A DNA stretch of 64,000 bases from contig OZ004614.1 in assembly GCA_963924565.1 (NCBI GenBank), positions 24,118,001 to 24,182,000 on the forward strand, written 5' to 3'. Below the pieces are notes generated by a model, which did not search any database, had not been told where the DNA came from, and worked only from the letters and a program-made list of their open reading frames with translations. Made by a program: the position numbers and the translations under genes. Positions 37,464-63,323 of the stretch are shown piece after piece (position 1 is the first letter of the stretch; each line of letters starts with the position of its first letter). Origin of the DNA: Ascidiella aspersa (taxonomy: Eukaryota).

Positions 37464-37467
37464 TGTT

Positions 37468-38629: not shown

Positions 38630-38942
38630 CTGTGTTAAATAACTATTACTATACAAATCATTTGTTAATGCACTTAAACTAATGTTGTTGAACACTTACC
38701 ACGAGGGAACGTAAACACAAATTCAAAACAAACTCTAGGCAAATGTAACGGTTAAATCAGCGTATCTGCGAAACAGGCGTAATAAGGAAGTATTTTAGAT
38801 AAGAAAAAAAACAACAACACTGAGTGCAATCAGTTCTACATCAATGAGCATTATAAGTCATACTATTTATCCAATGGGGTCGCCGACTTAACAGTAAAGT
38901 TTTAAACATGTTTCAAATGTAACACTAATTTTGTTTAATGTA

Positions 38943-38962
38943 ATATATATATATATATATAT
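38943..38962 (+). repeat. (AT)n microsatellite
   Basis: About 10 AT units. Confidence 0.9.
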
Positions 38963-40346
38963 TTCGTCACGTATTTACGAATAATTATTATTTTTGTTAT
39001 GTATCATTTTTCACCTTCGTTTTTTGTAAAAATGCTTAACTCGAATTGAATCACAGCCGGGGGGCAGCTGACCAGATGAATTAACAGTCTTTCGCCGCCC
39101 CCTGAGAACTACGAACTCGTCGTTTTTTTATTTAATTTTTTGCATGTACTTAATCTATCTATCTTCCTTTTGCTAAATTTGTTTCGATTTGCTTCACTTC
39201 TTGTCTTAGTTCGTTTCTTGCCGTGAAATGGTAATCACTCATTGTTTTACACTTTTGTTTTGGTCCTGAAGGAACATTTCTTCGTTTGAATTGTAAAATC
39301 CTGTAAACCTATAGCACGAGGTCAGTCTTGTTTTAGTTGTGTTGTGAGATGGACACTATTTTAGGAGCAAGCCAGCTAGCGTTTCGGCCTAGTTTCGCTT
39401 AAAAAAGAGCCCAGCGTTGGCGTTTGCGCCGCGTAGCCTTTGTCCAATAATAAAGTTAGTTAATTTAGTTGTATGCGTATACACGAGGTCAGTCTTGTTC
39501 TTGTTGTGTTGTGAGATGGACGCTAATTTAGGAGCAAGCCAGCTAGCGTTAGCGCGTTCGCTCAATAAAAGAGCCAGCGTTCAATAATAAAGTTTGCTAA
39601 TTTAGTTGTATGCGTACACGAGGTCAGCGAAAGGCCGTTAAGCAGGAACAAAATATAGCTTAAAATTCAGACATGAAGTGATGGATTGAAGAAATGACAT
39701 GAGATGCAATATGATTACTTCCGTCATACCAAGAATTGTAAATTAAGGCGCAATTGGTTTTTAACCCATCTCACTGATGCTAATGGCAGTTGCAAATGTC
39801 TTGCGTCCGTTGCTCAAATATTTACACCATAGGGCGAAAAACTATGCGAATCGCATTAAAATACTTAGGCTGGTTGTGTTAGAAAACTCCTTCTATATTA
39901 CAGTTTAATTTTTACTTTCACAAAGCTTAATTCCTTAATTGTTACTATTTACATCACTTTAATGTACAGGGTTATGTATATTAATCTGATTTGGATTCAT
40001 AGTTTACCATTTATTTGAATAACATGAATAGGATGAAGTAAATAACTTAAGCACCCAGGATAAATACTGAAATTAAAATCGAAATATTTATTTACAAATA
40101 TCCCTATTTTAGAAAGTTCGAAAATTTATTTTTTTATTGTTTAACTTTTTGCCTGTTTCCAGATTTTAATACAAATTACTAAGGCTTAGTAAAATATTGA
40201 GCTATTCTATAATCGTTAGAAGTAAACATTTCTCTAAATCCAATACCAGTAACGTATAAAGCGGAAATTCAAAACAGATAAATATTTATATATTTAAAAG
40301 CATCCCTAATATCTGTAAAAAAAAATGGAATAGAAAACACGTAGAA

Positions 40347-40574
40347 ATATAGCTACAGTATATAAACTGTTGCTACCAGGCATGGTAATATAAATAAAAA
40401 AACAGCTCTGTTGCTTGCGTTTATTTCTGCTTTTTTCCTTTTTTTTGCTTTCCATTTATTGTACGAGCGTTCATTGTCATTCGCCCTGACGAAGGCGACT
40501 AGCATAGGTTGCCGAAACGTTAGTTAACAATTACAATTAACAGAGGAGCTGTTTTTGATTTATATAGCTACAGT
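40347..40574 (+). mobile_element. Penelope-like short insertion with hammerhead-like motif and inverted 5' end
   Basis: CTGACGA-A-GGCGAC..GTTGCC-GAAAC at 40486-40518; 13-bp direct repeat ATATAGCTACAGT; empty site at ~10385 in unit 1; the 5' segment is an inverted copy of the 3' end. Confidence 0.62.
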
Positions 40575-41340
40575 GTTTACAAACTTTGATTTAAACGCTT
40601 ACGATAAAATTGCTTTCAGCAAAATGTCTATAAATTGAAAAAAACAAACAAACTTACTGCTGGAAATCTAATTTTATATGTTAGACCCCCTAAGATGCCA
40701 GGATATTTTTTGATTATTTGTTTGTTTTTTAACGCAGTGAACTTTATTAAAAGGTTAATGTTCGGCATGTTATTCTGAATTGACGTTCTTGCTAACGCAA
40801 CTTGTTCCTATAGAATCATAAAGAAACAAATACAAATTCTTTTCAAGTATGATCTTTTATTTACTTTCCATTCCGGCGAAAGACAAGCCTAAAAATAAAG
40901 TTTTGTAATCAAATGTCTTCAATTATATAGTTATACAACACTTATAATAGCCCATATAGGATTATATAATGGGAATAGGAATTTTAGTTATTACCTAATT
41001 CAAATTTAACACAAAGTCCAAAAACCATACGTTTAACGTCGGCGCAGAACAGAAATTACGTTTTTTTATCAAAATTAATTTTTAAACAATTAGGACAATT
41101 TTTTTGAATGTCCCTGAAGCACTCGCCTCAATTGCATCAGATAACGTTTAAAAATTGTCTGATCCTGGTTTTACTTGGATTTCAATTTTAGAGTTTCATT
41201 GTTGATTAGTGAACTTGGTTAAGCGAATTGTAAAAAAATACTGTTTTGTTTATTTAGCTTTAGTTACAGATGAGAAAAAGTTCAAATTTAAGTTTTGTTA
41301 GTGTCCCCATAAAAAATATTTTATTTTGTTGTTACCGCTT

Positions 41341-42566
41341 TCAAGCCTCTGGATTCCATCCAACTTCATCTGCATCGAAGTTTTCCAAACCTAAAAACAA
41401 AAATAACGCACTTCCTGTTATTTTAATTAAATATTTTATCCAAAAGGAATGGCTTATGATATTAGCATTATAAACATTAAATTAAAATAACCAGAATAGG
41501 TACTCTAGTACACATATAAATTATTTTTATCAATCATTAATTTAGGAAAAGCAATATTCGTGCAATACCTTCGAGATTTTGACTTTGATCCCTGAAAAAA
41601 ATATAGTGTTATTACAATTTGAAAGTAACAAATAAATTAAAATAACGATTGTGTATTTTATTACTACAACTAGGATTGTCGGATACACTTTATTATGATG
41701 CAGATACCAAATAATTTGGACAAAAAGTATTGCGATTAGCTATAATGACGTCATTTCTATGCTTATACAAGCAAATTTGATGAAATGTTTTCTTTTTTGA
41801 AATTTGCTTTAGTGCTAGGAAGTTTAAATACATAGAGTTATTAATTTCTTGTTTTTTGATAAATGCATCATACAATGTAGAAATGACTTGATTGGAATGC
41901 AAATCATTGCTAAAATCGTTACAATAATTTGTTATCGGATCGGCACCGATACCGACCTAGTATCGGACAGCTACCGATACTACCAGTTGGTATCGGGTAT
42001 CGGCTTTCATCCGATATTATCAAACATCCTAATTACTACAGTGCATAGAAGCACACCTTATTCCACTGCATCGCGTTGGTACCAGAGTTGGATCAATTGT
42101 AATTTGTAATTGTAATTGATATAATTAATTATAGGTTTTAATGTAATTGTTATTGCAACGTAATTGTGGCACTTTAATTCTGTGTAATTCTAATTTTAAA
42201 GGTAATTTGCTAAAATTTTGGCTCAATACATGGATTTTGAGAAAATTGAAGTTGCAATGCCGAAAATTGTAATTGATGTAATTAATTAAATGTTAATCGT
42301 AATGTAATTGAAACATTTAAGGGAGTAATTGTAATTGCAATTGAAATGAATCATTGAAATTGACCCAACTTTGATTGGTAAAATTATATACAACTAAAAT
42401 ACCCTCGGTTGCTAATATAACTTGGTTATTTCACTTACCTGCACCACGTTCCAGTGCACCATCTCCTTCTTCTACCTCCGAAAACCCTCCGTCTTCTACC
42501 CGCCTCTGTCGCCGACAGCAGCAGACAAGTCATCAAAAGCACGACCAAAAGCAGCCTAGAGTTCAT
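41341..42566 (-). CDS. Secreted Arg-rich peptide precursor, copy 2 (putative antimicrobial peptide), 66 aa
   Basis: Exons 42566-42439, 41591-41569, 41390-41341 give MNSRLLLVVLLMTCLLLSATEA-GRRRRVFGGRRRRWCTGTWCR-DQSQNLEGLENFDADEVGWNPEA*. Exon sizes are identical to copy 1. Confidence 0.82.
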
Positions 42567-45500
42567 TGTGAGTTGCAGTGAATTAACACAAACTGAAAAG
42601 AAAGGACTTAAGTATGACAAATCAACGATACAGTCGTTACGGATGAGTCGATAGCGGCGAAATCCTCTGCACGAATTCAGTCAACATTTTCTGGGTGAGT
42701 ACCACTCAGTGCATTTCTACTGCCGCTACTTACCACAAACTTTACAAATAAACCATTTAATTCAAAATTTTCTTAGGTTTATCACGGAATTAATGAATAA
42801 AAAATATCGTTGGAAGCCGCAGATTTCCGATTACAGTTCGACTTAATGCGCCAAAGAGAGAATATAACTTTCGACAGTCGCAATATATTTGCAGTAATTT
42901 CCTAAACGACGCATTGAATCTGAAGGCTGCTCGCGTTCTTTGCGTATAACGTGAACAACAGTTAGACAACTAATTCACTAATGTACTGTCTATAGGTCTA
43001 AGCATTACCTCGGTGACTTAAGAAGTTGCATAGCGTGCCGTAAGGCAAGAATGTTCACATAAACGCAAATCACAATCTTTATTAGAGATTTCTTTTCCTT
43101 CTAGGCCTAACCAAACGTGTTGTGACGCATAATAATCAGCAAAATTACATAAAAAAAAGCAAACAAAAAAGTGTTATGCTGCTTAATAATCTCCAGAATT
43201 ACATCCGTATTTCCTTCCTTTTTCACAGCTTTATTTAGCACATACGCTTTTCATGATGTCCCTTGGTGAAAATGCTGACAATCCACATAAGTTTGGGGTG
43301 TAGAGCTTTTCTCTCCTGAATCCGTTTTATAGCTAACATCAGTATTGTCAACAGTAAACAAATCACAAAATGTACTACTGCAATCTATTTCTTTGCTCAG
43401 TTAAATGTGAAACTAACTCACATTTTGGTATTGTATTATTGTGTTATCAGTAACTTGTATACAAATACAATTACAATTTTTTGTTTACTTAAGCAATTCT
43501 AGAAAGGGGTGCGAGAGGTGGTTTGTGATTTGAAAGGGGTGCAGCAAGGAAAACGGTTAGGATTCACTGTTTTGAACCATCCACGAAGCTATCCAGTAGC
43601 AACAATATAGTGCATTGTTGTAGATATTGGGCGACGATGTAATACATTGCGCTACAGTCGATTACAGACTTATAATCCTTTCGTTGTTCAGCTCGCCAAA
43701 ATGTGGTAATCACAAGATAAAATAAATCGTTTTATGACCAACCTAAGAAAACTGCCATACGGTTTTAAACAACAGAGCTTCCGATGCTTCCGTTAAGATT
43801 TCGTCCATACGTTGTTTGTCGCATTATTCCACTAATGTCAGATGGTGAGGTATTTTAAAAAACTTTTTGGAATAAAATTTGTTAGAAGAAATAACACTCA
43901 CCCCTTCATTGCATCAGTTTAACAGTACGCATTTGTATTTTCAATGAGGAGTTTTCTGACGTTTGACGCAGTTTAGCACTGGGATCACGTATATCGCGCT
44001 ACCAAGCAGGTCTAAACAATTGCTGCTACAACCTAAAGTTTTACGTCTGAAAGTTATTCTCAATTGACAAATGTTACGGGGTTTCGTTGCCTAAAAGATG
44101 TATAATATGCTTATCCCAGTGATGTGTGATATAGTTGATTATTTTATCGTGCCATTTTGAAAACATCACGCAGCATTGTACTTTGTCTGCATGTTAAATA
44201 CAAATGGCGCGCGTGCAACTTCTCGCAAGACCTCATGACGTATATTAAAACGTTTCCAAGCATTTATAGGGCAAAAACCTGCGTGACTGTAAAATCCATT
44301 GCCTTGGTAAAAATAGAATTTCATGTGGAAAAATTTCTACTTTTATGTTTAATAGCTTTTTGCAGTTTGTTTAACCACGTAAATGGAGCCTAAGTTCGCA
44401 AAACATTGCGTTTATTGCAGTGTTTTCATTAACATTTTTTCATGAGGGCACTTACACAGAATACGTACAGCAACCCTAACCGAGTATAAACTACACAAAG
44501 TTTGGACTAAGTTTGCTAAATATCACGTTTATTGCAGCGGTTTGAACACTAAGCAAATTTACTTTTCAAACAAGATTTTTTTAATTGGATGCAGAATGGT
44601 ACCTGCCGGGATTACGTATTTGCTTAAATTTCGCGCAATTTGAACAATTGGTGCTACAACGTTTTCACGTTTGTTAGTCATTTTTGATCGACATATGTCA
44701 CGGATGTTCGGTCAATAAATTTGCGAGACGTGTTTAGCCAAGGTTGTGTGTTTAGCAGCTCCTTTTAAAAAACACACAACGTTGCAATTTGGTTTGATGT
44801 CAAATATATATTTTTAAATTATCGGGAATAACATGCGGCTTCAGGAAGAAGGTTATACAATGCTGGTAACACGTGATTAGAGATTAAATGATCAAAGTGC
44901 GGTCGCGTCTTTCCTTTAGTGACCTGTGTCAGACACGAAACTGCTTTTTATACGTTAATTTTTCTTTTTTACTCTGTTTTAACCAAATTAAAAAAGCAAT
45001 GGTAATTTACCGAGACCAAGAGTTAGATCTTTAGAAACACGCAGATAAGTCACATAATTAAACACGCCATTCCATTAATATGCCGCTTTACACGGAGAAA
45101 AAGTTTGTTAGCATGCCGTATGGCAAGGATGTTTCTTATAAACGCAAGTCACCATCTTTATTAGAGACTTCTTTCCTTTCTATGCCTGACCAAACGTGTT
45201 ATGCTGCTTAATATCACCAGCATCACATCCGTACTTCCTTTCCTTTCTACCGCTTCACCCAACCCAATACGCTTGCATGGAACAAATGTTGACTACTGGC
45301 TTTCTTGTCTCATTCATTTGTTTTTATAGCTGACATCAGTGTCGCAAACAAGTCATTTGAAATGACTTAAGACCACTCAAGTCAAGTCAACTCCCAGTCC
45401 AGGTCATCAGTTGCCCTAATTGGAGCAAAGTCACGTCATTAAACTTAATTGGAGCAAGTCACGTCATTTGGCTCGAAAACCCAAGTCAAATAAAATAAAT

Positions 45501-47911
45501 GAAAAGCGTTGATTTAAGCCTATACAAAAGTCATCGACTAAAGTCAGCGCAATACTGGCTGACATTTGTCATATTGTCTCCGGCGACAAACTTCATTTGC
45601 TGAAATGTATACAAAGCAACAGCAGTCATAAAATGTCTCAGCGTTACGTCAATTACCGATGAAAAAATTGTTTTCTGTGAACCCGCACCATGAGTAAAAA
45701 ACCCACTCACTATGACTAGTTTAACAAAACATTAAATTTTGTTAATTCATTTTTGGCTTTCCCCCATTTATCGGCCTCGATTATAATGGTGTGTTTGACG
45801 ATTTCTTTAGGATCTTCCAATACTATAGAAGTCCTACATAAAAATTAGGTGCACATATGGAATGAAACACGTCGCTTCGTCTTCGGACATTTAAGTTATT
45901 TTAGCAAAGGGCTTAGGCTGCACGGAGTTGGCAAAATAATTAATTACAACCAATTTAGTTCTACTGCCTCAAACTACTTTCGAACTAAAATATTTTGGCG
46001 ATTTGTGTATTAAGACAATCCTCGAAGGTATAGAATAGAAAGAGTATAATGTTTTTACGATATTGGACGACATTGTAACATATTGCGCTATTCTCGTTGA
46101 TAGACTTCAAACATTAAATACACCTTATGTTGCCATAGCACTCTGTGGAATCAAGCGACAAAAATTAATCGTTTTATGACCAACCTCTTAACGAAAACTG
46201 CCATACTGTTTTAAACAACACAGCTTCCGTAGCTTCCGTTAAGATTTCGCCCATATGTTGTGCATCGCATTTTCCCAGTATTATCAGATCGTGTTCGTTT
46301 GTTTCAAAGAAGTTTTTAGAACAAATTCGGAAGAAGAATCAATTCCCACTCCAAATCAAGCGATTTTAATTAAACTGAAAACGACCATGTTAATAGTGGC
46401 ACCCAAGCAGGCTTGGACAACTATAAATAATTCTAGTTATCTTATTGAATTAATTCAGAGCAAAATGCGGCTAATTTTAATTCTAATCTAATTTGTAAAT
46501 TGCTGGTGTGCTTAATTCTAGTTCTATTTTCATTCGGATTTTCATAAAAATGCCACTTTGTCCAACGGCATTTATATTCTCCCAGTTGAAACTAAGAATT
46601 TTAATTTAATACTCTTTGGGTGGCACAATTTTTTGTGATTTTATAATGTGAAAAGTATGATAAAACATCATTATAAAAATTTGCACACAAATATTTACCC
46701 ATTCGCATTTATTATGAGAATAATTAGCGAATGAGATATAATTTATTGTCGATAAATAAACGTAATGGGGGCCTTAAAGTGTGGGACACGACACGAAAAG
46801 TCACGCCAAAATTGACGATAAAAATATATAGCGAAAACACAAATGTAATTCACGTACAAGTCAACTTAGCAACGTTTTATGATTGTTTTCATATTTTGGG
46901 AGCCAGCCTGTTGACTTGGTTCTACACGAAACTGCAGGAAGCAATAGATTGTTAGTAACGCTACTTCTCCGTTAGTAACGCTACTTGGCGATCGGGTATT
47001 TAATAACACGGAGCCGTTATGGTTAGCTACTGCGATTTCCCGAATGGCTAACCCGAGTGGAATAATATACACATGTGGAAAATGCATTTAAGTTGTAATG
47101 CCCTTTAATTGCGCGAAGAATGTTAACTTGCAAAATAATAAAAAACATGACATAATGGAAGAAACGACTTTGATTTAAGCATACACAAGTACTGGAAGTT
47201 ATGGTTTTAAGGATTCAATAACGACAGTCGCATAAAGAAAAATATAATGTGCACTTACGACGTAGCAATGTAGAGTTTAATTTCCATAAACTCGTAATAG
47301 AACTTGAACAACACAATAATAAAGATATTTTGTTTGTTTAGAACAAAGTTCACGGAAACCCCAGAAAACATCTTGCGACCCACGTGTTGGGAACCACTGT
47401 GTTAAAGAGTTGCAAGAATTCAACGCTTTCCGTGTTATTCGTTTTCTGCTCAAGTAAGTTTGAAAAATTTATTCTGATCTGTATTTTGAATGCATGAAAA
47501 TCAATATGTTTAAACAAATCATTTATCCTCCATTTAACCCTATGTGTTGGTTCACTATTGAAAAAATTATTCACGCTGGGGCGAACCATTGGCCAGTTTA
47601 AGAAATACAGCGTTATATCACGTAAGTCAGACTACAGGAACATATCATATTTGGAATCATGGAATATTTACCATGGGGTGACATTGTGAAAATCAAAACA
47701 GACAATCTATAGTGCTTTAATGCAATTTGTTAACTTCCTTCTTTCTTGTTTTTAATATTTCAAGTTTTTTTGTTTGTTTTTAGTTTATCTTAATTCTTTG
47801 AGGACCAAAAAGGTGCCATGCATAGTATGACTTTTTGCTCAGTGTGAACTAAAAAACTGTCCACACTGCACAATATCCAAATGCGTTTGTTAAATTAATT
47901 GTGTAAAAACC

Positions 47912-50900
47912 CTAGTAAGCTCTCTCGTACACTGATTGGCCAACAGCAGCGTTACCAATCCCAAACTGCTCGTATGCTGTGTCTTCACTTGCAGCAATCC
48001 TTGAGACGTTGTAAGCTTGACCAGGCGACTCGCCATTGGCTGATACGTAGGCAACAGGAATGACGTAATCACTGTCGTCAGATGGATGGTTGGTGACGTC
48101 ATAGCTGGGATGAGCAGCAAAGCTAGTGTTGACGTAGTTGTTGCATTGTCCTCGAGATTGATCTTCAGCGTTGATGGACTTAGGGTCGTGACCTAGAAAA
48201 AAATTAAGCGTTGAAAAAAATATAAAATATTCTTAGGCACAAAATTCTATTTTATACACATGAATATTCTTCAAATGACAAGATATATTTTGTTAATATC
48301 AGACACCAAGGTGTTCACAGTATATTTACCTGCTTGGGGTGGAGAACGATTGTCACTTTTCCGTTTTTCAAGCTTTGTCAAAATTTGGTTTCTGAATGAA
48401 AAAAGCGCAAATATATTCACTTATATATTTGACAAAAACACAAATATATTTCACAAAATGGCTGTCGGGTCATACAATACCCACCTCTTGATGTAAACAA
48501 GAATGGCCACTCCAATTAGTATTATTACTGCACAAGAAACTCCGATTGGGGTAGCGACGCTGAGACTAGAAACAGACTGATTTTCTGAAAATAAAATACT
48601 GTTCGCTAGCCTGTTAGTATATTTATGTTTAAAAGTTTTAACTTAAGTTGTGATTCAAATTTTGATTATACGCGAAATTTGGGGCAACTTAACAAAAGAG
48701 CTTATAGTTGTACATTACGTAAAAGCTGAATATAACAATGAAGTTGCATTGCGTAATTATTGATTTACAAATCAACATCTACACTTTTATATGTGCCAGC
48801 ATTTATTAAAAACATTGTGGAGTCTAGCATGATTTACTGTAAAGCATTTAAATGAAGTTTTATAGTCACCTATTGGCAGGTAACATACGCCATTCGATGG
48901 AAGAATTGTATTTCTGCACAATGACGTAATTAGGTGAAAATCTGACGTCACCGTGTCTCCCTCATTCAACGTGACGTCATGAGTCAGTGTAGATGAAGGC
49001 GTCAGTGTTATTTCGTAAGTTGTAGTTTTGTTGTTTTTGCTGGTTCTTTTAATTTTCAGCTACATACAAACAAAGATTTCAGAAAAATATACTTGGGTGA
49101 ATCAGTAATGCAAATGACATACCTTTGCACTTGTGATAACTGAAACAGACGAAGTTGGAATTGTGATTTTAATTTGGCAGATTTTGTTTTGAAGGGTAAG
49201 TTTAGAAGCGATTGCTGCAAACACGTTTGAAGTTGATCCAGAAACCATTGGGGTTTGGGGGACTTTCCAAATTTCAGGAAACATCTTGATCTAAATTATA
49301 TTATTTTAACTATTATAAAGTTTTTTGATTTTTGAAACAATGCAACACACAGTGTCGTAATTAGTTGGCTAAAAAAAGAACGAAAATGAATGGTGTTAAA
49401 CTTACTTGAATCTTGTAATCTTCATTACCAGGCAGGTTTCGAAATTCCGTGGAGTGAAAATAGTTTTTAGAAGCCGTCGTTTTGTAATTTTTTACGATGT
49501 TAATTGATTTGTCGGAACTTTGTGCAGTCAGCTGAAATTTGAAATCCCTGGAATATTTTGTTTCATCAATCCACTTCACAATTATTTTGTCGCTATGGCA
49601 CCGAGTAGCTTCAGTAAAACGAACAACTGAAACATAAAAAAGAGAATAATTGTTTCAGCAAACAGTTATGAAAATGGAAATGCAAAAAACAGTAATTTCC
49701 GTTTATTTTGTAAACTAGATTATTACATTATGCTTACTGGCAAAAACACAGAGAGTGGTTGACAGGAAGTTGCAATTCTTGATTTGTGATGTTCCATTCG
49801 CAAATGAAGGGCATTTGTCAGCATCTAAAGTTGCATTCTCAGTACCTGAGTTAAAAATAAGCAATTAATTGAGGTTCATTTACTAAAGTCAAACAATTTG
49901 GTTAAATTACTTTGGGTCCAAACCGCCAATTTTGAAAGCGAGCTTCCGTTAAGATATTCCGACGACGGTAACTTGCCTCCGTGGTTCTTACAGTGTAGTG
50001 AGCCATCCGAGTATTTTCTACTCGTGTTATAGCTGACGTAAAACAGTCCATTGTCGAACCGCAAATCTGTGAAAACCGAATTTTTTAGGTTTGTGTAAAA
50101 TACTCGCTTGTATGGGTTAGAATTTAATTGTAAACACGGTCGCACTTGCGCTTTCTCGCTGTTTATAATAAACCAGAGTGGCCTTACATATACCCAGCAT
50201 ATTGTTTTAAACTATTATTTGTTGATTTTTTGCGTACCTAAAAGGATAAATACGAAATCGTGCGAAATTCCTATAATTGTATAATTTCTCCGTGTACAGT
50301 TTTTTGGGTGTAAACTCACCGTTACAATATTGCAATGTTACAACAAAAAATACTGAGGAATCACAAACGTTGCATAGGCCACAAAAAAGTGTTGTTACAC
50401 AGAAAATAAAATATATTTATTACCTTGGTTAATCATAGCAAAAATATTCTCTGTAGTACCGACTTCATTTTGTGCCGAACACTTTACAGTCGCGTTGGCG
50501 CCAAATATCGCGGAAGCTTCTATTGTTAGTGACGTCACTGTGTCGAGGGACCTGTGGATTGTGACGTAGGTTGGCGACGCGACGCTGTTGATTGTAACGT
50601 TTTGGTCGTTGATTGTCCAATGAAAGGTTGTCGACTGGTCGGCGGCAAACGTACAATTCAACGTCTGTGATTGGCTGAATTCTGCACCTGGTGATGACGC
50701 GTTAAGAAACCTTGGGGCAACTGAAATGTTCAAAAATCGCAACCTTATTAAAAAAAAATTAAACCAGCAGGTGTGTCAAACATTTGCTCAAACATACATT
50801 CATAATCTGGGCCCCAAAGGTCGCCGGTTAGAACCTACGAGTCCCTGGCGTTAAGTTACTTAAGTTTAGCTTGAAATAAAAAAAAATAAACAACAAATAG

Positions 50901-53900
50901 TATAGCTATGAAAACACATCTAAGGAGGAACTTCTCAACATGAAGGGAAAACATATGTTGATGAAATAAATTATTGAATTTAGATTTTTTTCAAGAATAA
51001 CGTAAAGGATTCACAATAGAAATATATCAGGTCATTGAAAAATATTTTTCTGTAGCAAATTGTTAACAATCCGTAGTCATTAAAATGTAGTGTAGCAATG
51101 GCGTAAAATATTTGTTAAATGGGGCTTTATACTTTGTTTATTCATTCAACAAGGTTTACCCATAATGATATATATTTGATATATTTGTATCAATCTTACC
51201 TCTAACTAGCAGTGTCTTTTCTACTGGGGTTATTATGCCGTCGCCCACTCTGTTGCTTGCATGACAAACGTAACTTCCACCGTCCGCTGGTGAATAAGTT
51301 GATTTAAATGTGATGACAGCAACAGTCTTGTAGATCATCTCATGAAATACTCTCTGATATACTTTAGCATCACTGCTTGTCGATACATTTTGTAAAGCTC
51401 TGTAGGAGAATTAAACATTACACACGCCCACGGCATATATAGTTGACAATGCTCAGTAATATAATCAATAGTCCAAAGCCATAGCTGTGAAGTCGGTTAA
51501 AGAAACGAGTCTGACTCGCTTGTCCCGAGTTCGACCCCGGCCTAATGTGCAATTTCGTCGAGTCCCGTGTCCGACTCCCACTGGAGCATTTCTTTTATTT
51601 GAGAACATTTGGTGGATATTCAGCAGTTCACTATATGTCATGAAATTCTTCCACCCACAATACATTATTGGAAGTTCTTCCACCATATACTATCCCACCT
51701 TTACAATTTATAGTTGCGGCCTTAACCGTTTGGAAATTTAGTAAAACGAATGCGCACGTCGGACTCGGCACTCTGGTAGTTGTAGGTAGTCTTATCGAGT
51801 TCTTTTTTGAAATTGTTTTTGAATTTAAGATTTTTTATTAAGCAGAACTTAACTTTTAAAATAGTCATTAGACGTTTTCAAGCATCAAACAAAATGTTTT
51901 AAATCATCTTGTTTACTTTAGAAGCAGTCCTGTGGAGTCGGGACTCGGGACTCGTTTAAGACTACTTCCTAGTCCAACGTACGCCTGCTCATTTGCACGT
52001 TTGTAATCGATAAGGCCGTAGACTGGAAATTGTAAAGGTGCAATAGCATAGAGTGGAATATTTTCCCACCACAGTGTGTGGGTCTATTGTTCGCATGACA
52101 ACTTTTCAAAGATAGCTGTATAAATGAATATGCACATAATTTGATTACGGGGAGGGTGGGATGCATGTTTGTGGAGTAGGAGCCGTATACAGGACTCAGA
52201 GTCTAATTTCGACTCGGACTCTGGTTCTTTTAAACCGTTTTAAAGGTCCTTCTTACAATAATTAAATATATTTTAACCTGTTTTTACTTTATAAATTGTG
52301 TTTTTAACTTATGTATGTCGTCTGCGCAAAGTTAGTTATTTTTTCCCACTTTGTCCAGTAAACATCTGGTGTTGGAAAGCCGTATGATGTACAATTGATT
52401 TGTTGCTGTTGACCGTCATTTAAGGAAGTTGTTGAGGACAAAAGATATATGTTGGCCTTCACTAAAAACATGATGAATCCAGTTAACGAGTATAACTTTT
52501 CGTCTTGCTACTGTGTCTTAACTTGAAACGCATACCTTGCAGTTGAAAGGTGGTTTGAACAGCATTAGCGTTATCGTTGTTGTTGCTTGCTGTGCATTTG
52601 TAAACCCCAACTTGCTCGATGCTTGCTGCGTTAAACTGGAGACGAGCAACCTGTTGGTTATGTGTAATGCTGTTTGTTGTTTGATATACTTGAGATGCCG
52701 TATTGGAGCTGACGGTTTCAGCGTTTCTGTAAAAAACAAATAGTTACAATTTTTGCAACAATAATATATTAGTTAAATATAATATGACCTGCTCCAGGTG
52801 ACTGTTGGGGTCCGCCATCCATAAGACACGCAATCCACATGGAAACTAGCTGGAAACATTGGGATCTTCCAAGGTGATGATGGGGAAAGTGAAACGTTGG
52901 CTCTAACTGAAAATATTTCAAATGTTTAACTTGCCGATACTTGGAACATTGTCAACTGCGAACTTCGATGAAATGATTAATGTTTGAACTAAACAGTTGA
53001 TTTATAAACATCACAACAGGCATTAACGAATAACAGTTTGGTGTTTAATACGTTTTCACATCAATAATATAATCAATCAATAACTGTAATGCAGTATATC
53101 ATAATGCTACAGCAAAAACATTTTTAAGCTGTAAAGATTGTTATGCAAATAGCTTCTCACTTTTTCTACTGCTTACGATTTTTACACTTACGAAGTATGC
53201 CATGAATACAGTATTTCTTGGTATTTAATATCAGTACGGTATGATGACTTACTTAACATTTCCAGAACAGTAAACTTCACTTTTCCTCCGTTTTGGGCGG
53301 TGCAAATATAACGTCCTACCACTTCTAACATTGCAACTGGAATGTGGAGTGTTGCGGTTGATTTGTATTTCGCAACTTCAGTCAAATTAGTTTGATAATA
53401 CGGATCGTTGTTGTTGGAGGAAACAATCGCACCGCTTGTTCTAAATTTAATTGTGTCCGTAAATTTAGTTACATTAATACAGACCAACACTTCAGTTTGA
53501 TAGAGGACTAACAAACCGAAACCAACCTCTTCCAATATACGTTGGGCGTGGGATAACCATAACTGGTGCAGCTTGATGTAATCGATTTATCGCCATAATT
53601 CGCGGTGATTACGTTCGATTTTGATAATGTCATGTTCGGTTGCACTGCAAAATGGTTTACAGAGGATTTGACAAAAAACAAATGACATGCGTAAAACTCA
53701 AGATTTTCTTTAAATATGGTATAATAATTATAAACCAGGATGTCTTTTCAACATTGCATCTATTACAGGACTTTTATCAATATAATTGTTGAGCCCATGT
53801 ATCCACAAAGCCTATTCTCTATTTTTGGATCCAATTTTTTAAATAAGAATAATCGTAGGGTAAACCAGTCGTCGGCAAACGTTATTTATCGCGACCAAAG

Positions 53901-56900
53901 GTGCTCTTTCACGAGCTATTCAAGGCCCACTACGTGAAACCACTACGACAACAGTGGTGGATCTAGAATTTTGTTAAGAAGTGCGTAGTATAGATTTAAG
54001 CACGAGATAAAGAAACATTTACACTCATAAATTTGTCTAAGGGTACAAATATAAAGGAACAAATCCATAGCCTTGTGGCCCTATAATGCAAAAATAAGTC
54101 TAAATGAAACTCTTGGCCACGCCATGATTGAAATGAATTAATATGGATGTACGGTATACGGCTATCACGCAGCCCACAACTACATGATAATTTTAAATAA
54201 TAAACGGTTGGTCGCGCTCCACTAAATATTGCTCGAAGATCCACTTAGTCTGCGGCCAACAGTCTGTCTCCAACTGACTTAAAACCTTAATTGTTATAAA
54301 TTGCGCAATATAAATCAGCCCTTTACCTGTAACAGTTAAGGTTCGTGTTTGTTCGCCTACGATCCAGTTTGCCGCAACTTTACAAACGTAGCTTCCACCA
54401 TCATGAACGTTAACAAGCCTGAAGTGTAGGGTTCGTCTCACGTGATATCCACTTGAAGATGTTGATTGGTAAACGTGGCGGGTTGTGTCCGTAGATACTA
54501 AAGAGCTCCCTCTGAACCAAAGTAAAATAATTATGTTATATTGCCATTGAGAAAGCAAACATACCCTTAAATTGGATACAATAACGTACTGTATCAGCTT
54601 TGGAGGGTGCTACACGCAAATGTGTCGATTTTTTTTTAAATTTTAGGTCGTTTTGTTTAAGCAAAAATAACATTATCGTGAAATTAAAAGATATAGTTAT
54701 GGGGTTCACTGGCCTTGTGCCTTCATGCTAATAAGTTTAAAACACTTTTAGTGAAATGAAACTGAGCTGCATGAATTCATTTCGCACACTAATTGCGCGC
54801 GTAACTTGGTCCAATTCCCGAGCGTTTTTTTTCCTGATATAAATGTAGACCTCGAAAAACGCTGCACACACCCACGTTTCCCTTTGGCAACAGTACACGC
54901 GCTATATTCTGAGAGAACAAAACGTCTTGAGACCTAATCTAACGGTTATTCGCGGTCAAATGGACTTTTGGCAGTATTATTTAATATATATGTCAATCCC
55001 AAACATACAATATAGTTTTCCATTATAGATGAACTGCAGCAATCATGTTAAACCAACCTCATCCAATCAACTTGTGGTATAGGGTTTCCTCTCGATTCGC
55101 AAATAACTTGTTGTGTTGTTCCATGCGCAAGGTTAATAGCGGTGGGTGAAATTGCTATCGTTGCCGTTACTGAAACCGGAAAATGATAAGTTGAAGGCCA
55201 CTAAGTGAGGTTAGTCGATGTTACAAAGGGAAATTTGTAAAGAGGCCCAAGACAATGCACATATAAAACGTGGTTGCTATAACAGAAAGTTAAATTCTAC
55301 CTATCAGCTTGTCGCTCACATATAACTGTACATTTTAAACCAAAAAGGGCAAAATATTCGATACATTACCTGCGGCTTCTTCAGTGGATGAACAGTACTT
55401 TGCACTTAGAAGTTCTAAGTTAGAACTGTCAAGGCGTTATAGGTAATGTAGTATCGGAGGCTTCTATTGTAGTGAGATTATCGAATATCAGCAACTGTAT
55501 GGTATTTAATTTGTATTTCATTTCACTCTACAAAAAATTGCTAGTTTCTACTTACCACGAATAGTAAGAGTCTTGCTTTTCACGTCACTTCCAGCCCAGT
55601 TGGTCGTCCTACATTCGTACAAACCCCCGTTCCCAGCGTCGTTGTTGATTCTAATGTGAAGATCAGAGTTGCCAGTTGATCCTCCGCTTGTTGTGGTTGA
55701 TACTTGATGAACTAAACTTGATGAACTGGAAGAAACCTCCGCGTTGTTCCTTGAAAGTATAAGGACGTACAATAATGAGCACTTTTTTATGTTTATTTTT
55801 TGATGAATTGCGCCTATGGTAAAACTGTTTCTTTTTTTGCCTATGGTATACAGTTTAATTTATAATATATATTTTGGTATTTCATTAGTTTGTTTTATTA
55901 TTCGTTTTATAGGACGAGGTTGTCTTCTGAAAATTAACATTATTGTTTTTCACTATTATGTAGATGTAGGCTTTGTAGGACATATTTTGATTTTCCAAAA
56001 TATTTAACCTTTGTTTTTTCTTGTTTAACTTAAAGTTGATAGTTCCAAATACTCGGACTTGAAAAGGTATCCCTAATCTCACACAAAAAGAAATATTGTT
56101 TATAAAAATACTTTTACATTAATAATTATTTTCATTTTAATTACTTATTTAAATTGGAATGGTAAAAACACCAACAATTAAAAGGAAGATTTGTTGGTCA
56201 TACCGTTACAACATGCTCAATTGCATGTGTTTAAAAACCTTCAAAACAAAACGAAGTCACATATAATGCCTACCCTACCTGAACCATCTGCACTGAGGCT
56301 GGTAATACCCCGAGCATGTGCATCTCACAGATGTCATTGAGTTTATGCTCATTACCAGTGTTGTAGATGTGAGATGCAATGCAGAGGAACCTAAAGCAAA
56401 AATAAATTGCAAACAGGAAACTACCCAACAACTTACACGGAATCTATTACACACCAACTATACTGATTAACAAATGCGTGCCTATAAAGATTATATTGTA
56501 ACTTTGAGTACAGAATAGCTTATTTTAGTTTTTTTAAATATGCCATAATTATATAAATTTTATTACCAACTACAAGCTTGACTGAAGCCACAATAGAACA
56601 GCTTCCAGCATTATTGCTTGCAGTGAACACGAAATCTCCGTTGTGTGACAAGGCGACAGGATTGATGACGTAAGTAAAGCTCGTTCCAACGAAATTACTT
56701 TCAACGTTGGTGTTTGTTCCACCATGAGCAACAACCACTTTCAGAGGTTCGTTGTAAAAGCCAGAGATGGTTCCTGTAAATGTCAAACTGCTTCCCAATG
56801 TTGGTGTGCTGGTTGATGACGTCACAGTCAAGTTGCGGGGAACTGCGTCGTTTAAATAGTATTTCATCATAATAAAGTTTCTCTTTACCATAATTTTTGT

Positions 56901-59900
56901 TTTTATTTTCTATGATATGGAATTGACGAACAGAATGTATTTTAAATGGACTGTAAAACTCAGGGCAATCCAAATTTGCCCTTGCAGAATCGATGGCATT
57001 CGAAAAATGAATCTTAACTACCATCGCTTCAAAAAACGTCTATATCATACATCAGAGGTTCCCAAACTGTTTAACGTGCGACATAAATTTAAATTTAGGG
57101 AACACCCGAGACCCAATTAAGACACGGAAACATACTATAAATTATACTGATTTACATTGAATTTGGTCTAAAACAAATATTTCCCTTTAATGAACAATAA
57201 CGGTATTTCAATACATACATGATTTATTAAAGAAAGAGACTTGAATACCCCAAAACTATTAATGATGCAACAATTCAGTTCATAAAGACGAAACCAAAGA
57301 AGTGTGTTTAATGCAATTATATATAAATTTACAACAGTCAAATATTTGTCAAATTTAAATTGAACCTGCGCGACCCAAATTTACCCTTAGCGACCCTTCT
57401 ATTTGGATGAGGGCCGAAAGCAGTGGTCGGCAAACTGTGTGCCGCGCTCGAAATGCGGGCCGAAGAGCCATTTATAGTCGGCCGCGAGTTACCTATTAAT
57501 AGCTTAGTGTTATCATGTAGTCGTGGGCAGCGTGATAGCCGTACATTCATTGTACTTTATTTTAAAAGTCGATGTGTCATAGAATTTTTAAATTGGCTCA
57601 GCTTGAAAAGGCCCACGTACCAAATGTGATCCTGTGAGCCTGTGGATTGTGTCAAACTATATTTTTTGTCAACTTTAACTATATGTAAACCCAAAATTTT
57701 TCGCGCATCGCGCGTATATCCTTCGTTCTGTAGCAGGGGCGGTCAACTTCTCCAGTCGGCGGGCCCGATGTGGGAAACTGAAGTACTTGGCGGGCCGGAT
57801 TCCTGATCGATATATTAATACTACTGCCATGACCTACATGTTTTGTCGCATGATGGCGGCTAATGTTCTGCTCTTTAAACACGACAATACTTTCATTGCC
57901 CTGCAAACAACTAATATTTTATTGCTGACTTGAAAAGGAACTTCGGCATCCAATATTTATTAAACTTTACGTTTCTCGGCACAATCCAAGGAATAATATT
58001 GATTTAAACTCTAAATCTAAATTTGGAACACAATAAGATCTAAAAATCAACAATACCTAAGGCAGAAAATCAATAATACCATAGTATTAACACCAACGAC
58101 ATAATAAAGCCAAACACGCAGTAATATCTACGACAGAATAATAACTACATCGTCTAAATAAGATACCAATCTGTCGAAGTAAGTCCTAAATTCTTTGGAA
58201 CAAGGCCTCTATGACCAAAATCACGCCTTAAACTGTGGGAGAAGGTATGGGACGATGGGGGCCATGGAATTGGCCGTTTTGGTTTTAAATTTTGGGCGCC
58301 CTGGTTTGAAGCCCCTGTTTTGACACCTGATTATCTGGCCCTGTTTGGGGTAATTGGTGGCTGGTGGGTAATGAGTGGGGTTAGAAAATGGGTTAGGGTT
58401 GAAATTATTAGTGGAGTTAGTGATGTACTTAGGGGTGAGGTTTGGGGTTAGGTAAAATGTTTTATAGGCCTGATTTAGGTATTATTCCGACGGGTTTATG
58501 ACTTATTCCGATTTAGACGGTTATAGGACTATTTGATATTAATACTATTTTGGTCTTATTCCGTACCGGTAATGTGTGCTATAGTTTTATTTCCGAACTG
58601 TGTGATATTGATGTTGTTCTTATTTCGATGTTATGGCTTGAGTCCTCTAATTTTAACCCAAAACAAAACCTAAAGAATAACTAACAATCATTATTATTTG
58701 ACGTAGTAAGAAAGTAATTGGGGATTGCGGTAAACTGTGGCCGCGGGTCCCATTATCATGTAAAACCGGAAACTGCGGGCTTCTCAAAATCCTATCGCGG
58801 GCCTGATCCGGCCCGCGGGCCGTATGTTGGCCGCCCCTGTTCTATAGTATGTTTTTCATAAGGCATGGCATTGTTTTTGCAATCAAGACGCTGTGTACTA
58901 TTTCACCTTAAAATCGAATATCCTGAATCCGCCACTGTTTTCATAGTGGTTTTATGTCGTAAGCCGTTAATAGCTCTGAAAACAGTACTTTGGGCCGTTA
59001 CAAAAAAATTTGCCGACCGCTGGACTAAAGGCTACTTTATTTAGAACCACTGTCGAATACAGAAATAATTAGTTTGCAAGCCGTCAGCATATTCTTCCGG
59101 ACCATCTTAAATCAAGCTAGTCAATAACTTTAAACTAAATGAATATGTTGCTGCTCCCAGCCACTGTTTCAATTCTACAATTGTCATTTCGGCAAAATTT
59201 AATTAAAGTTTTATTAATTTCTCATCAAAACTGTTTTATTATTTTCCAGTAGTAATGTTGTTAAATTACACTCACAAATTCCAAAATAGATTGTGTAACA
59301 GATACTTTTCTTTCAAGTTTGTACAGTTAGACCGATCAGACCAATTCACCTTGATATTCGCATATGTAGTACAATATTCCAGTGCACAACGCATCTCCCC
59401 ACTTCCAAGTGTAAGTAAAACTGCCTGATGAGCCGGATCGTGTTCCAGCAAACACCATACAAGTTCCACTGCCTGAAGGTCCACTTCCACTTGTCCATCC
59501 ATTGTATCCCGTTGTTGACCAAATGCTGCCTGATTAAACGAGTTGTGTTTGTTTTGTTTTTGACAGAATAATGTTTTCAAAGAGAAAACGTTGACACCCA
59601 TGAACTCTTATCACAATGACTTTGTTAGTTTGCTAAGCCAAAATAAACACAATTGAAAGAAAAGCAAATTCCCCTTTTGCAGAGCGACAGGTAGCATTAG
59701 GATTATCACACTTTTTTCTGGAGAACTGTAATGCCTGACTTTTGCGGCCGGGCATGATTTTTTCATACCTCATAAAATAGTTTATGTTAAACGAAGAATC
59801 TATATGTATATTATTTAATACAAATTCTCGAACTTTATAAAATTTTCGTTCAGTTTAATAATTCTTTCATCTATAATAGTTCGGATTTGCATCTGACAAC

Positions 59901-62900
59901 ATCTAAAGCGTTTTTTCACTCTATTTTCGCAAAAAAGACGCACACAGTAAACGCCGGCCCAACTAACTTTTTAAGTTGGAAGTTTCTAGCATTTGGTGCA
60001 TGAAAATTATGAGGGTCACATTGCTTAAAACATAAAGATCAATACAGACAGCGTCGGCAAAGCCTTTTGTTGATGTATGCCTACGGTATCCTGTATAATG
60101 AACCGCCCACATAACAGTAAATAAATCAACTATTTTATTAGACGTACTTCTTTTACCGAAACGTTGTTTCAGACCTTGGCTATGCACAACCAATCAACCA
60201 TATTACATCGAAATATATATTTCAACAAATTATTTTTGGTATACAAATTTCCCCGTAATAAAACTGATAGTTGTGACGACCTATGATTTGTTATATGTAG
60301 GGCCGAAAAAGTCAATAAAGTTAAATTTTTTTATGGACCTCCTCTGTCAACAAATCAAAGAATAAAGTTGTTTTTAGCACCTAGGGAACTGTTTCTAAGA
60401 AGTTTATAGGTCAAAATAAAGTTAAAATTTACAATAAAGTTGAATTTTTTTAATAAAGTCAAAATTTGTCAAATTATGGCTTTTGACAAAGTTTTTGTGT
60501 TTCTTTAGAGTAAATTTTGTAAAAATCGTCGTGGAAGCATTGTAAATCAGGAACTGCGACACAGATAAACCATATTAACCCATAAAAGCAAGAAAAATGA
60601 CCCAATGCCCACTTGGATCAGCAGTGAATTTTATTGCAAATTGTCCTTTTTTATTTATTGTTACGTATTTAAATAATTCTTATAAACACTTCATCTTCAT
60701 AAACGTGGTCTTTTCGAAGGTCAACAGTTTGGATCTTAGGAATAGCCTACTGACATTCTGTTATACAGTGGTTCCCAACGCATGAGTCGCGACCCAAAGT
60801 TGGGTCGCCTGATTATTTTTTGGGCCGCTTGTTTTTCAGGCATATTGTGTCTTAGGCGGAAAAATAACAGTAAAAAAATTGAAACGTGAAGAGACCACAT
60901 CACTGGAAATTATAAACACAACATTTGATAACTAAACAGCGAAACCGGCTGGAAGATAAAGCTGACATGCGTGACTGAGAGCAAGCGAGTACAACTATCT
61001 CATTAGTGATTTGATAAACATATTATTTTTGGAAAAAGTAACTGCTTTTGTAGTACAGTTTGTTTGCAACGCAATCTTGTATGATATTACGACAATTTGC
61101 TTGGGTCTCAAGAGTTTGTCAAATTAGTTTTTTTTTCAAAATGGGTCGCCTTGAAAACGTGTTGGGAACCACTGCTGTAATACCAAAATGCATAAGAAAG
61201 CTAAATCTATCGCAAAAAATCCCGTCGCACTTTATATAATCCATAAAACACCTTTAATTTTTGACAAAATTTACGTTTGGGTCTGAAATTTACAAAATAT
61301 TATTTTGGCTAACTGGCATTAATTCAAAAAAGAACTGTGGCCTCTACAAACAAGCAATTTTGTTAGGTTGAAATAAAGTTAAAATTTGACAATAAAGTTA
61401 AAAAAAATAAAAAAAAAATAAAATGGCCCTAGTTATGTGTAAACGTTTTGCTATAGGTATAATATTACCCAGAATAACTTCCCTGGTAATTATTTTTGTT
61501 CAGGGTTTTTGACACAAACTGCTACATATTTAAGTAGGCTACCGGTATTGAAAGTTTTTCACCCTTACAAAGGCGACCTGAATAGGTAGGTTGTCCAAAC
61601 TTTGAATATCAAAAATGTTTACCAGATAAGCTATTTTGGAGACCTTAAGTAATATGTGCACATTATGTAAAACAATATTTCACGATTTTATTTAAAATTC
61701 ATTAATCTTGAATAACATGCTCAACCGATAAGTAAGTTAAACGTGCAACAATTCTAGGTTGATTTCTTTTGGCAAGACAATTACCAGATTTTGTTGAAAA
61801 TATTGTTCCATCTGGCCACTTAAAGTTGTTTTCAGCACGTTCCCCACCGATGTAAGCATCTGGCACAAATATTTGTTCTAACACTTGCAATAAACAATGT
61901 AGGCATAATGTCGATGTTTGTTATATACTTACAGACTTCGCTACCTCCAGTCCACCCGTTTCCAACCTTGTTGCTTGCGAGAGTGCTGAGATGTTTTTGT
62001 GTTGCTTCGTCAGGAATACTTGCCAAGTTACCACCTCCAGCAATGCAAGCTGACTTGACGTTGGCTTGATATGCCTTGCTGCTTGAAAGCACGAAGTTTT
62101 TTCCCTTGCATGTTGTAGCGCCTATAACAGCACATTATGCTCTACGCTGGATTTGAGTTCATTTTTCCAAACAAATCGAATTGTATATAGAAGGTTTTAA
62201 CCAAAATTAAATTCGACGATTGTCAAAAATGTGATGCCATTTGACAAAACCTTCAATAAAATGCGCGAAATACAAAAATCGAACCACATGTATTTCAATT
62301 AATACAACTACAGCATATTGACCAATAAACAATTGCACCGCAACCTCTTTTCACTTGCGGCAAACCAACAGAACTATAAAAATTCGACGGCACACCTTTA
62401 TAAAAAAAACAAATATCCTAGGCTGCTCAAAAAAAGTAGCTAGTTATGATTAAAGGCGCAGGAAATTTGACGTTTTACATTATTTTTATAAATCCTCAAT
62501 ATGACCTAAGGCTTATACGAAATTGTACCCCTTGTTATCCCGGACAAGGAATTTATGAGGGCTTTTATAGCATATTCGAAAAACGCCCCTGACAATTCAG
62601 CTTACGTTTTGACAATTATTTTTGGAGCAGCAGCCAAGATTTATTTCATCAAATAGAAATGCCAATAGAGTTGAAAAACAATTGCTGCATATTTATACTC
62701 CTGACACCTGGCATGGGCTCACTGGTTGCGGAGCACTACGATAAACAAGTGACTTCCGCATGGAAAAAATGCACCAATTTGAAGCATTTTTTGTTTTTTA
62801 TGAAGAGTGCGTGTTTTTCGGAGATAAATAGTGTCGTCTATGAAACTGCTGATTATCATGTTGGTTTAGCATGGTCGTATGCTTTTTTCTTGCATACCAA

Positions 62901-63323
62901 ACAAACTTTTCGATTACATGAATTTGTATCACGATAAACCAAAATATGTTTAGTTCACTCTGTATTGAACTTGCAAGTTGCAACTGTGACAAATGAATAC
63001 TTATTAAAATAATAATTTAAATCGAGTGTTGCTTATTAAGCAGTATTACATAAACAATCGACGTTTCGACTTCCTATACAGAACGTCTTCATCAGGATAC
63101 TGACATATCACGCAAAACAGATTCCTTACAAAAAACGTCGATTGATTATATATTACTGCTAGATGAGCAACAATTTATATATTAGGCATGGCAGCAATAG
63201 CTTATTTCAATAAATTAAACGTTGTTGAAAACTTTGGTAGAAAATACAATAATACAAACCTGTTTTGTCGATTCCAACGGCCGTTACCAATATCAAAGAT
63301 AAGATAAACATCGGGTAAAACAT
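47912..63323 (-). CDS. Receptor copy C (intact, ~1298 aa): SP-CTLD-7xIg-CTLD-like-FN3-like-TM-Tyr-rich tail
   Basis: 24 GT-AG exons with continuous phase: 63323-63260, 62121-61933, 61859-61785, 59529-59350, 56842-56567, 56390-56279, 55749-55556, 55169-55058, 54511-54327, 53644-53527, 53440-53253, 52906-52789, 52726-52536, 52461-52350, 51399-51200, 50720-50424, 50066-49911, 49845-49738, 49626-49406, 49290-49123, 49059-48870, 48584-48485, 48391-48330, 48192-47912 (3897 nt). Signal peptide MFYPMFILSLILVTAVG; CTLD motifs C..GGNLASI, YIGG, FKWPDG, WKWGDALC..YYICE; Ig motifs such as C.S.G.P.P.V.W and DGGSYVC; TM IGVSCAVIILIGVAILVYI followed by KRR. Confidence 0.85.
57734..58839. mobile_element. Nested hAT-type MITE
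   Basis: TIR CAGGGGCGGTCAAC / GTTGGCCGCCCCTG; TSD TTCTGTAG / TTCTATAG. Confidence 0.75.
58025..58645. mobile_element. Innermost non-autonomous DNA element (GG...CC ends; family also at 30939-31392)
   Basis: Starts GGAACACAATAAGA, ends TTATGGCTTGAGTCC; subterminal repeats; similar to 30939-31392. Confidence 0.6.
60298..61431. mobile_element. TAGGG-ended hAT-like element in intron 3 of receptor C
   Basis: TAGGGCC...GGCCCTA; TSD GTTATATG / GTTATGTG; AATAAAGT subterminal repeats; absent in A and B. Confidence 0.75.
60766..61174. mobile_element. Nested hAT/Charlie-type MITE
   Basis: TIR CAGTGGTTCCCAAC / GTTGGGAACCACTG; TSD CTGTTATA / CTGTAATA. Confidence 0.8.
63027..63172 (-). mobile_element. 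Hammerhead-like (Penelope-type) motif with inverted repeat, intron 1 of receptor C
   Basis: Paralog of 34148-34293; CTGATGAAGACGTTC..GAAGTCGAAAC starting at 63095. Confidence 0.55.

Follow-up and report, generated by a model that had tools for sequence, protein, structure and literature searches.

What kind of receptor is encoded by a tandem group of long minus-strand genes in the ascidian Ascidiella aspersa, and to which of the known receptor systems are these genes related? The DNA analysed, here called the window, is a stretch of 64,000 nucleotides on contig C8 (OZ004614.1; C8 24118001-24182000) that holds two complete genes, gene A and its paralog gene B, together with the 5′ part of a third, gene C. 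The predicted proteins start with a C-type lectin-like domain (CTLD) followed by Ig-like domains and end in a transmembrane helix and a tyrosine-rich tail. The reading favored here, which we regard as somewhat probable, is that A and B are intact genes of a tandem family of type-I receptors specific to this lineage, in which they belong to a phosphatase-less branch, with the family being proposed as a paired-receptor recognition system.

Gene A and its domain plan

Gene A, on the minus strand at 63323-47912 of the window, is intact and has 23 exons with GT-AG introns throughout and matching phases. Its coding sequence of 3,729 nucleotides (ATG at 63323-63321, TAG at 47914-47912) translates into 1,242 residues with no internal stop. 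The window is AT-rich (~35% GC, no N), and the open segments of the minus strand between 63.4 and 47.9 kb encode in turn a signal peptide, segments of lectin-like sequence, a series of half-Ig segments (C...W, Y.C), a hydrophobic helix and a Tyr-rich end. Splice sites were placed by phase, AG/GT and conservation across 12 paralogs from the same contig, and the same 23 exons with the same order and splice sites are found in paralog B and 10 further array genes. Frames and split codons were verified for each exon, with every domain search or fold being run on single exons or exon profiles. The first-pass annotation had described a complete, phase-consistent frame of 24 exons; the intact frame, its phases and its exact end coordinates stand, but 23 exons were counted and no 24th was found.

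Two alternative boundaries were rejected. In a 22-exon model with a short last exon from 48104 the motif NYVNTSFAA lies upstream of the acceptor, and its conservation in relatives with 57% tail identity argues for exon 22 (48391-48330) followed by a longer exon 23. Likewise, an exon 2 donor at 61945 lacks the GT in four of the 12 paralogs, with GTAAGT being present 12 nucleotides downstream (61933) in all copies. The exons of gene A are as follows.

63260-63323, minus strand: exon 1, ATG and signal peptide, donor phase 1; hydrophobic N-terminus (Kyte-Doolittle hydropathy, KD, 2.4); GT donor kept in 11 paralogs
61933-62121, minus strand: exon 2, N-terminal part of CTLD1; GTAAGT donor in all copies
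61785-61859, minus strand: exon 3, middle of CTLD1 with WIGL-like YIGG and FKWPDG; AG/GT kept in 11-12 of 12 paralogs
59350-59529, minus strand: exon 4, C-terminal part of CTLD1 with GPS (for EPN) and WGD (for WND)
56567-56842, minus strand: exon 5, Ig-like domain 1, without the Cys pair
56279-56390, minus strand: exon 6, N-half of Ig2; Cys/Trp pattern, splice sites in 12 of 12; a 36-residue piece with no Pfam match
55556-55749, minus strand: exon 7, C-half of Ig2 (YEC); Pfam Ig_2 E=0.003
55058-55169, minus strand: exon 8, N-half of Ig3; Pfam Ig_3/I-set positions 3-36, E=0.01
54327-54511, minus strand: exon 9, C-half of Ig3; Pfam I-set positions 34-89, E=0.003
53527-53644, minus strand: exon 10, N-half of Ig4; Pfam Ig_3 positions 2-36, E=0.002
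53253-53440, minus strand: exon 11, C-half of Ig4; Pfam ig/I-set positions 42-82, E=0.004-0.008; TTTAG acceptor in all copies
52789-52906, minus strand: exon 12, N-half of Ig5; Cys/Trp pattern, splice sites in 12 of 12; no Pfam match
52536-52726, minus strand: exon 13, C-half of Ig5; Pfam I-set positions 46-83, E=5e-4
52350-52461, minus strand: exon 14, N-half of Ig6; Pfam Ig_3 positions 8-36, E=0.001
51200-51399, minus strand: exon 15, C-half of Ig6; Pfam Ig_2/I-set E=0.08, YVC motif
50424-50720, minus strand: exon 16, Ig7 as a whole domain; Pfam Ig_3 E=5e-4, I-set E=0.001
49911-50066, minus strand: exon 17, N-terminal part of the compact CTLD2; profile match to lectin-like domains
49738-49845, minus strand: exon 18, C-terminal part of CTLD2 with three Cys and without the long loop, from sequence reading and conserved splice sites; no Pfam match
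49406-49626, minus strand: exon 19, FN3 strands A-F; predicted fold
48870-49059, minus strand: exon 20, end of FN3 and membrane-proximal stalk of ~40 residues with two conserved Cys; kept in 12 paralogs, no family match
48485-48584, minus strand: exon 21, transmembrane helix with no charged residue; KD 3.15 over 15 residues
48330-48391, minus strand: exon 22, 62 nucleotides, basic juxtamembrane segment; from distant-paralog conservation and the phase requirement; kept in 12 copies
47912-48192, minus strand: exon 23, Tyr-rich tail of 92 residues with eight Tyr; YVN, DYVIPVAYV, TAYEQF, SVYERAY; TAG

Exon by exon the evidence supports the order signal peptide, CTLD1, seven Ig-like domains, a compact CTLD2, FN3, Cys-containing stalk, transmembrane helix and a tail of ~115 residues with eight Tyr. 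The plan initially proposed, CTLD, seven Ig, CTLD, FN3 and transmembrane helix with a Tyr-rich tail, is borne out by the exon-wise profile, fold and transmembrane tests. For CTLD1 a 15-copy profile of exon 2 searched against PDB returned C-type lectin domains only at the top (PLA2R and FcRY at 2-3e-7, then codakine, MRC2, CD93, DC-SIGN and CD69), with Pfam Lectin_C giving E=0.05, below the gathering score. The exon 4 profile aligned its W-G-D...C...YICE with the WND...C...FICE of mosquito C-type lectins (E 0.06-0.4). Across the 15 copies the core Cys, one in the alpha-1 region (exon 2) and three in exon 4, are invariant or nearly so, and the WIGL-like YIGG lies in exon 3.

At the sugar site in exon 4, GPS stands at the place of EPN and WGD at the place of WND, both as first reported, with WHD, WGN and WGA as variants of the latter and the P and W invariant in 15 copies. 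The EPN/QPD and WND pair is thus absent, and of the five ligands of the Ca2+ site the Asp alone is kept and four are lost. Since the GPS and WGD motifs retain only this Asp, canonical Ca2+/sugar binding by CTLD1 is unlikely, and the doubt voiced on this point at the outset is reinforced by the loss of the other four ligands.

Ig1 (exon 5) was predicted by AlphaFold2 (AF2) as a seven-strand sandwich with a pLDDT of 92, its best PDB folds being Ig V domains and JAM (TM-score 0.55-0.70), and gave Pfam Ig_3 at E=0.007. Each of the domains Ig2 to Ig6 is encoded by a pair of exons. A Pfam Ig profile is matched at positions 2-36 by three of the five N-half exons (exons 6 and 12 giving no match) and within positions 32-89 by all five C-half exons (E 5e-4 to 0.08). 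The Ig7 exon profile had no match among PDB sequences. In the case of CTLD2 the exon 17 profile found the intimin lectin-like domain (7e-4), bitiscetin, DEC-205 and snake lectins, and hhalign placed it in register with CTLD1 exon 2 (E=4e-5, probability 69%); exon 18 is short, so that CTLD2 is without the long loop region. The FN3 exon 19 was folded by AF2 with a pLDDT of 88, its top PDB folds being nearly all FN3 (TM-score ~0.6, E 0.03-0.1). Pfam fn3 was detected in three of 10 family copies (best E=2.5e-4), and the FN3 exon profile had no match among PDB sequences.

The tail is encoded by exons 22-23 and comprises ~115 cytoplasmic residues with the eight Tyr. A pattern scan of the tails of A, B and ten other array copies found YxN and YxxP only, with one YVN (a Grb2-type YxN) and one YVIP (YxxP), and in relatives whose tails are 57% identical the motifs YVNT, DYVIPVAYV, TAYEQF/L and SVYE are still present. 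Two sites that fit the immunoreceptor tyrosine-based inhibitory motif (ITIM) occur in the tail of a distant relative at 25.2 Mb. In array copy g0 (tail exon C8 ~23997900-23998760, minus strand) the DYV(T/I)PVAYV unit is tandemly repeated, with four copies in the translated frame and three YVxP pattern matches. The same copy has a duplicated block of exons 13-19 and no detectable exon 1.

The tandem array and its phosphatase-ending siblings

The genome searched comprises 308.6 Mb in 75 contigs. It contains at least 51 matches to CTLD1 exon 4, 24 to the tail exon and 24 to the CTLD2 exon, most of them in clusters on contig C8. The first-pass annotation had seen two further paralogs in tandem and had proposed counting those in the flanking DNA: the two are one complete gene (B) and one 5′ part (C), the family is much larger than three, and the array around the window (C8 24.00-24.56 Mb, ~570 kb, all genes on the minus strand) holds 12 Tyr-tail genes and four interleaved siblings that end in a protein tyrosine phosphatase (PTP) domain. 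It had also named a one-to-one ortholog of a conserved adhesion molecule as the finding that would overturn its proposal; with at least 51 copies, gene A is not a one-to-one ortholog of contactin or of any other such molecule.

Eleven of the array tail exons (that of A included) are 92-100% identical to the tail exon of A, and the twelfth is more distant. Of the 12 Tyr-tail genes eight, with A and B among them, have open frames, the other four having a stop, a broken exon or no exon 1. Among these g6 and g7 (C8 24244200-24283900) are near-identical neighboring duplicates ~23 kb apart with an in-frame stop in exon 9 of both. Elsewhere on the contig three CTLD1 exon copies (C8 25324387, 25349773 and 25375131, minus strand) have a spacing of ~25 kb, identical scores and one TGA each, and look like a pseudogene duplicated after breakage.

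Exons matching PF00102 lie inside the array on the same strand at C8 24.199, 24.349, 24.426 and 24.496 Mb, downstream of four family heads that have no tail-exon match. None of the 150 matches listed, of 156, falls in the range of the window, and A and B have no PTP domain. In P1 (C8 24.199-24.230 Mb), the one sibling of the four that was mapped in full, exons 1-5 are 77-86% identical to those of A and exons 6-16 32-74%, exons 17, 19 and 20 show a weak but significant match to A, and PTP exons follow. The upstream region, exon 1, intron 1 and exon 2 of P1 have 87-95% nucleotide identity to Tyr-tail genes, and its remaining introns do not align. Its PTP domain has an intact WPD loop and the catalytic motif VHC/SAGAGRTG, the slash marking a phase-2 intron that the motif spans, and the best PDB matches of the PTP exon are RPTP epsilon, alpha, sigma and LAR (4e-15 and weaker). 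With these catalytic motifs intact the sibling domain would appear to be active. The family cluster at C8 8.24-8.48 Mb likewise consists of PTP-type members.

As such, A and B are shown to be a phosphatase-less branch of a family whose siblings keep the exon plan outside the cell and end in a classical PTP domain. What is new is that genes ending in a PTP domain and genes ending in a Tyr tail, with similar heads, are interleaved in one array. On contig C6 dozens of tandem PF00102 matches were seen at ~29.0-32.6 Mb and 7.22-7.32 Mb with no CTLD1 exon matches nearby, and these arrays are a separate large tyrosine phosphatase expansion.

Because the interleaved siblings carry a classical PTP domain, the nearest relatives of A and B are the receptor protein tyrosine phosphatases (RPTPs) and not KIR or Siglec. 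This changes the picture suggested initially of a likeness to KIR- and Siglec-style clusters, as does the absence of canonical ITIM, ITSM or ITAM from A and B. Classical RPTPs (LAR/PTP sigma; R3 PTPRB/J) share with the family a type-I membrane topology and Ig/FN3 domains, with WPD and HCSAGxGRTG carried by the array siblings; they differ from A and B in having a PTP domain, and are conserved single genes whereas the present family is large and tandem. A literature search found no paper describing an RPTP with a CTLD-Ig ectodomain or the present family, and to our knowledge no described RPTP has an N-terminal CTLD, seven Ig-like domains and a second CTLD. The R3 RPTPs combine FN3 repeats with a single PTP domain and carry YxN tyrosine motifs (PMC5336234), and YxN motifs are likewise found in the window genes.

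Gene A is a mosaic. Over 48.9-51.9 kb (exons 15-20 and their introns) it shows 99.6-100% identity to gene C, and over 55.4-57.4 kb (exons 5-7 and their introns) 99.4-100% identity to gene g11, which lies 300 kb away. Outside these tracts no copy exceeds 98% identity to A, with values of 70-93% for the most part. These comparisons of aligned copies show what appears to be an exchange of 2-3 kb tracts within the array. The pooled pairwise ratio of non-synonymous to synonymous change (pN/pS) ranges from 0.11 to 0.67 over all 23 exons, and such values below 1 in every exon indicate that the exons are coding and constrained; exon-level positive selection, as pN/pS above 1, was found in none of the 23. 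The highest pN is that of CTLD1 exon 4 and Ig2 (0.13) and the lowest that of the transmembrane segment and tail (0.02-0.04), with the tail exon also having the lowest pS of the exons (0.067).

Recognition, adhesion or decay

In the proposed paired-receptor system the ectodomain would bind a protein or an atypical glycan ligand and the tail would be phosphorylated by a Src-type kinase. The phosphorylated tail could then recruit SH2 adaptors, of the Grb2 type at YVN and of the Crk/Nck/PLC-gamma type at YVIP, with the PTP-bearing siblings sensing the same kind of ligand and opposing the Tyr-tail signal. Together they would form paired receptors serving cell-cell recognition or self/non-self discrimination, for which an immune or allorecognition role is a plausible candidate. 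The KIR, Ly49, Siglec and SIRP clusters resemble the array in being one-strand tandem clusters with similar ectodomains and opposing cytoplasmic modules, tract exchange and pseudogenes. They differ in having no sequence relationship to A and B, which are without ITIM/ITAM and without a charged transmembrane residue, and the opposing arm would be a covalently attached phosphatase in the array siblings as against the phosphatase-recruiting ITIM of KIR/Siglec-type receptors. A further and distinctly tentative step is to regard the array as a germline-encoded paired-receptor system of a non-vertebrate chordate, in which a diversifying lectin-Ig head would be joined gene by gene either to a phosphotyrosine-docking tail or to an active PTP, with tract exchange giving variation.

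A number of points weigh against the paired-receptor reading. No single-exon domain score reaches its Pfam gathering threshold, and the E-values of the PDB profile searches are mostly modest, so that the case for the architecture rests on mutual consistency. In the tails of A, B and ten other array copies the pattern scan found no ITIM, no immunoreceptor tyrosine-based switch motif (ITSM) and no immunoreceptor tyrosine-based activation motif (ITAM), and we infer SH2 recruitment from short motifs alone. The low pS of the tail exon implies that the near-identity of the tails owes much to gene conversion and not to constraint alone. Ten-codon windows with pN/pS above 1 number 13 of 212, all in the ectodomain, a count that carries no significance test and is confounded by conversion. 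Tracts of 100% identity could in principle be assembly chimeras.

Two further such points concern expression and conservation. One RNA run with the same species label and of unspecified tissue, of which ~6% was read, gave nine reads on 47800-53790. These lie on the tail exon and around exon 19 in the orientation of minus-strand RNA, except for a few at 51.6-52.0 kb that fall in an intronic repeat in the opposite orientation. A check of RNA junctions had been suggested by the first-pass annotation, and of this the few reads oriented as expected agree with the gene model, but no splice joint was reported among the nine. Transcription in this RNA sample is at most faint. A phmmer search of the Ig7 exon against 1.84 billion representatives gave five matches, in a set whose tunicate coverage had no positive control and which says little on other ascidians; of the three examined, one matched bacterial repeat-protein families, another a putative Ig domain and the third no Pfam family. 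A word-index search for outside homologs of the Ig1 exon gave no match in a library whose tunicate coverage likewise had no positive control. These searches thus found no relative outside the genome.

The main rival, unlikely if to be taken seriously, holds that these genes are developmental adhesion or guidance receptors of the contactin or LAR-RPTP kind, neural or epithelial, that were multiplied in this lineage. Insect Contactin is a single-copy protein with six Ig and four FN3 domains. Its succession of CTLD, Ig and FN3 in a GPI-linked septate-junction protein (PMC8006247, Table 1) is the plan seen here in the N-terminal CTLD, Ig array and following FN3. The two-exon Ig domains, the FN3 and the PTP siblings also recall LAR-type RPTPs, with the sibling PTP exon matching RPTP sigma and LAR, and selection that is purifying overall would suit such a role. 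The present family differs from Contactin, however, in its seven Ig-like domains, second CTLD and single FN3 and in having a transmembrane helix and a Tyr tail of ~115 residues in place of the GPI anchor. In addition, at least 51 tandem copies, pseudogenes, tract exchange and ectodomain patches of excess amino-acid change are unlike conserved single-copy adhesion genes.

A role in gamete or colony allorecognition (self-sterility, fusion/rejection) as a polymorphic receptor locus is decidedly improbable. In Botryllus schlosseri, Fester has Ig-like and Sushi domains and FcoR is an Ig-superfamily protein with an ITIM or hemITAM (PMC12582321), and like the present family these are clustered, diversifying, copy-number-variable ascidian receptors with tyrosine signaling motifs; gene conversion would create the variants that such a locus needs. 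Against this the architecture differs from every known ascidian allorecognition gene, Fester and FcoR having no CTLD, no seven-Ig array and no PTP siblings and a Pfam scan of gene A exons 2-20 having given no Sushi match. In addition, RNA was near zero in the single run. As cited in later papers (PMC7916673, PMC5465252), a putative C-type lectin of Botryllus with one I-type Ig domain, small and soluble (Pancer et al., 1997), is also a tunicate protein with a CTLD and then Ig, a likeness by description only. That the array is largely decaying duplicated DNA with non-functional window genes is very improbable, for although four of the 12 Tyr-tail copies have a stop, frame break or missing exon, copies in other clusters share the same TGA and RNA is almost absent, A, B and six more copies keep 3.7-kb frames over 23 exons with all splice sites, and no exon reaches a pN/pS of 1.

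For the open question of how specific recognition is built, a single species (Botryllus Fester/FcoR) has supplied the answers to date. Under the paired-receptor reading the present family would add a second candidate of different structure, its 50 or more genes having one type of head in common and, within one array, two tyrosine-signaling ends that oppose each other. It would further illustrate, in nature, how receptor phosphatases can give rise to signaling receptors that have no phosphatase. If the reading is true, the paired head and tail array would be an undescribed build of activating and inhibitory recognition, for instance in self/non-self or microbial discrimination.

Neighboring genes and spacer

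The two further family members in the window are as follows.

19066-34437, minus strand: paralog B, complete, 23 exons, 1,242 residues; exon map, splice sites and open frame
1-4029, minus strand: paralog C, exons 1-5 and part of exon 6, the remainder lying before the window start; the full gene encodes 1,233 residues and is intact

Per-exon identity between B and A is 66-97%, and their DNA similarity includes the introns (72-89%). The copies are gene duplicates of ~29 kb each, gene and spacer together. In intron 1 of B a partial extra copy of exon 2 lies at 32344-32457 (minus strand) upstream of the real exon 2, with 68% amino-acid identity over 38 residues and 85% nucleotide identity, and could be a pseudo-exon or an alternative exon. 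The 13-kb spacer between A and B (34600-47800) contains a single open reading frame of at least 90 residues, a TTG-initiated frame of 170 residues at 37292-37804 (minus strand), and no notable tandem repeat. A low-GC dip at 40-42 kb recurs at 10-12 kb and is thus part of the 29-kb repeat unit. Within gene A the intronic segment at 51600-52200 has a word depth in a DNA run of more than 1,300 compared with ~400 elsewhere and a few RNA reads in the opposite orientation with loose ends at 51750, and is probably a multi-copy transposable element in the intron between exons 14 and 15.

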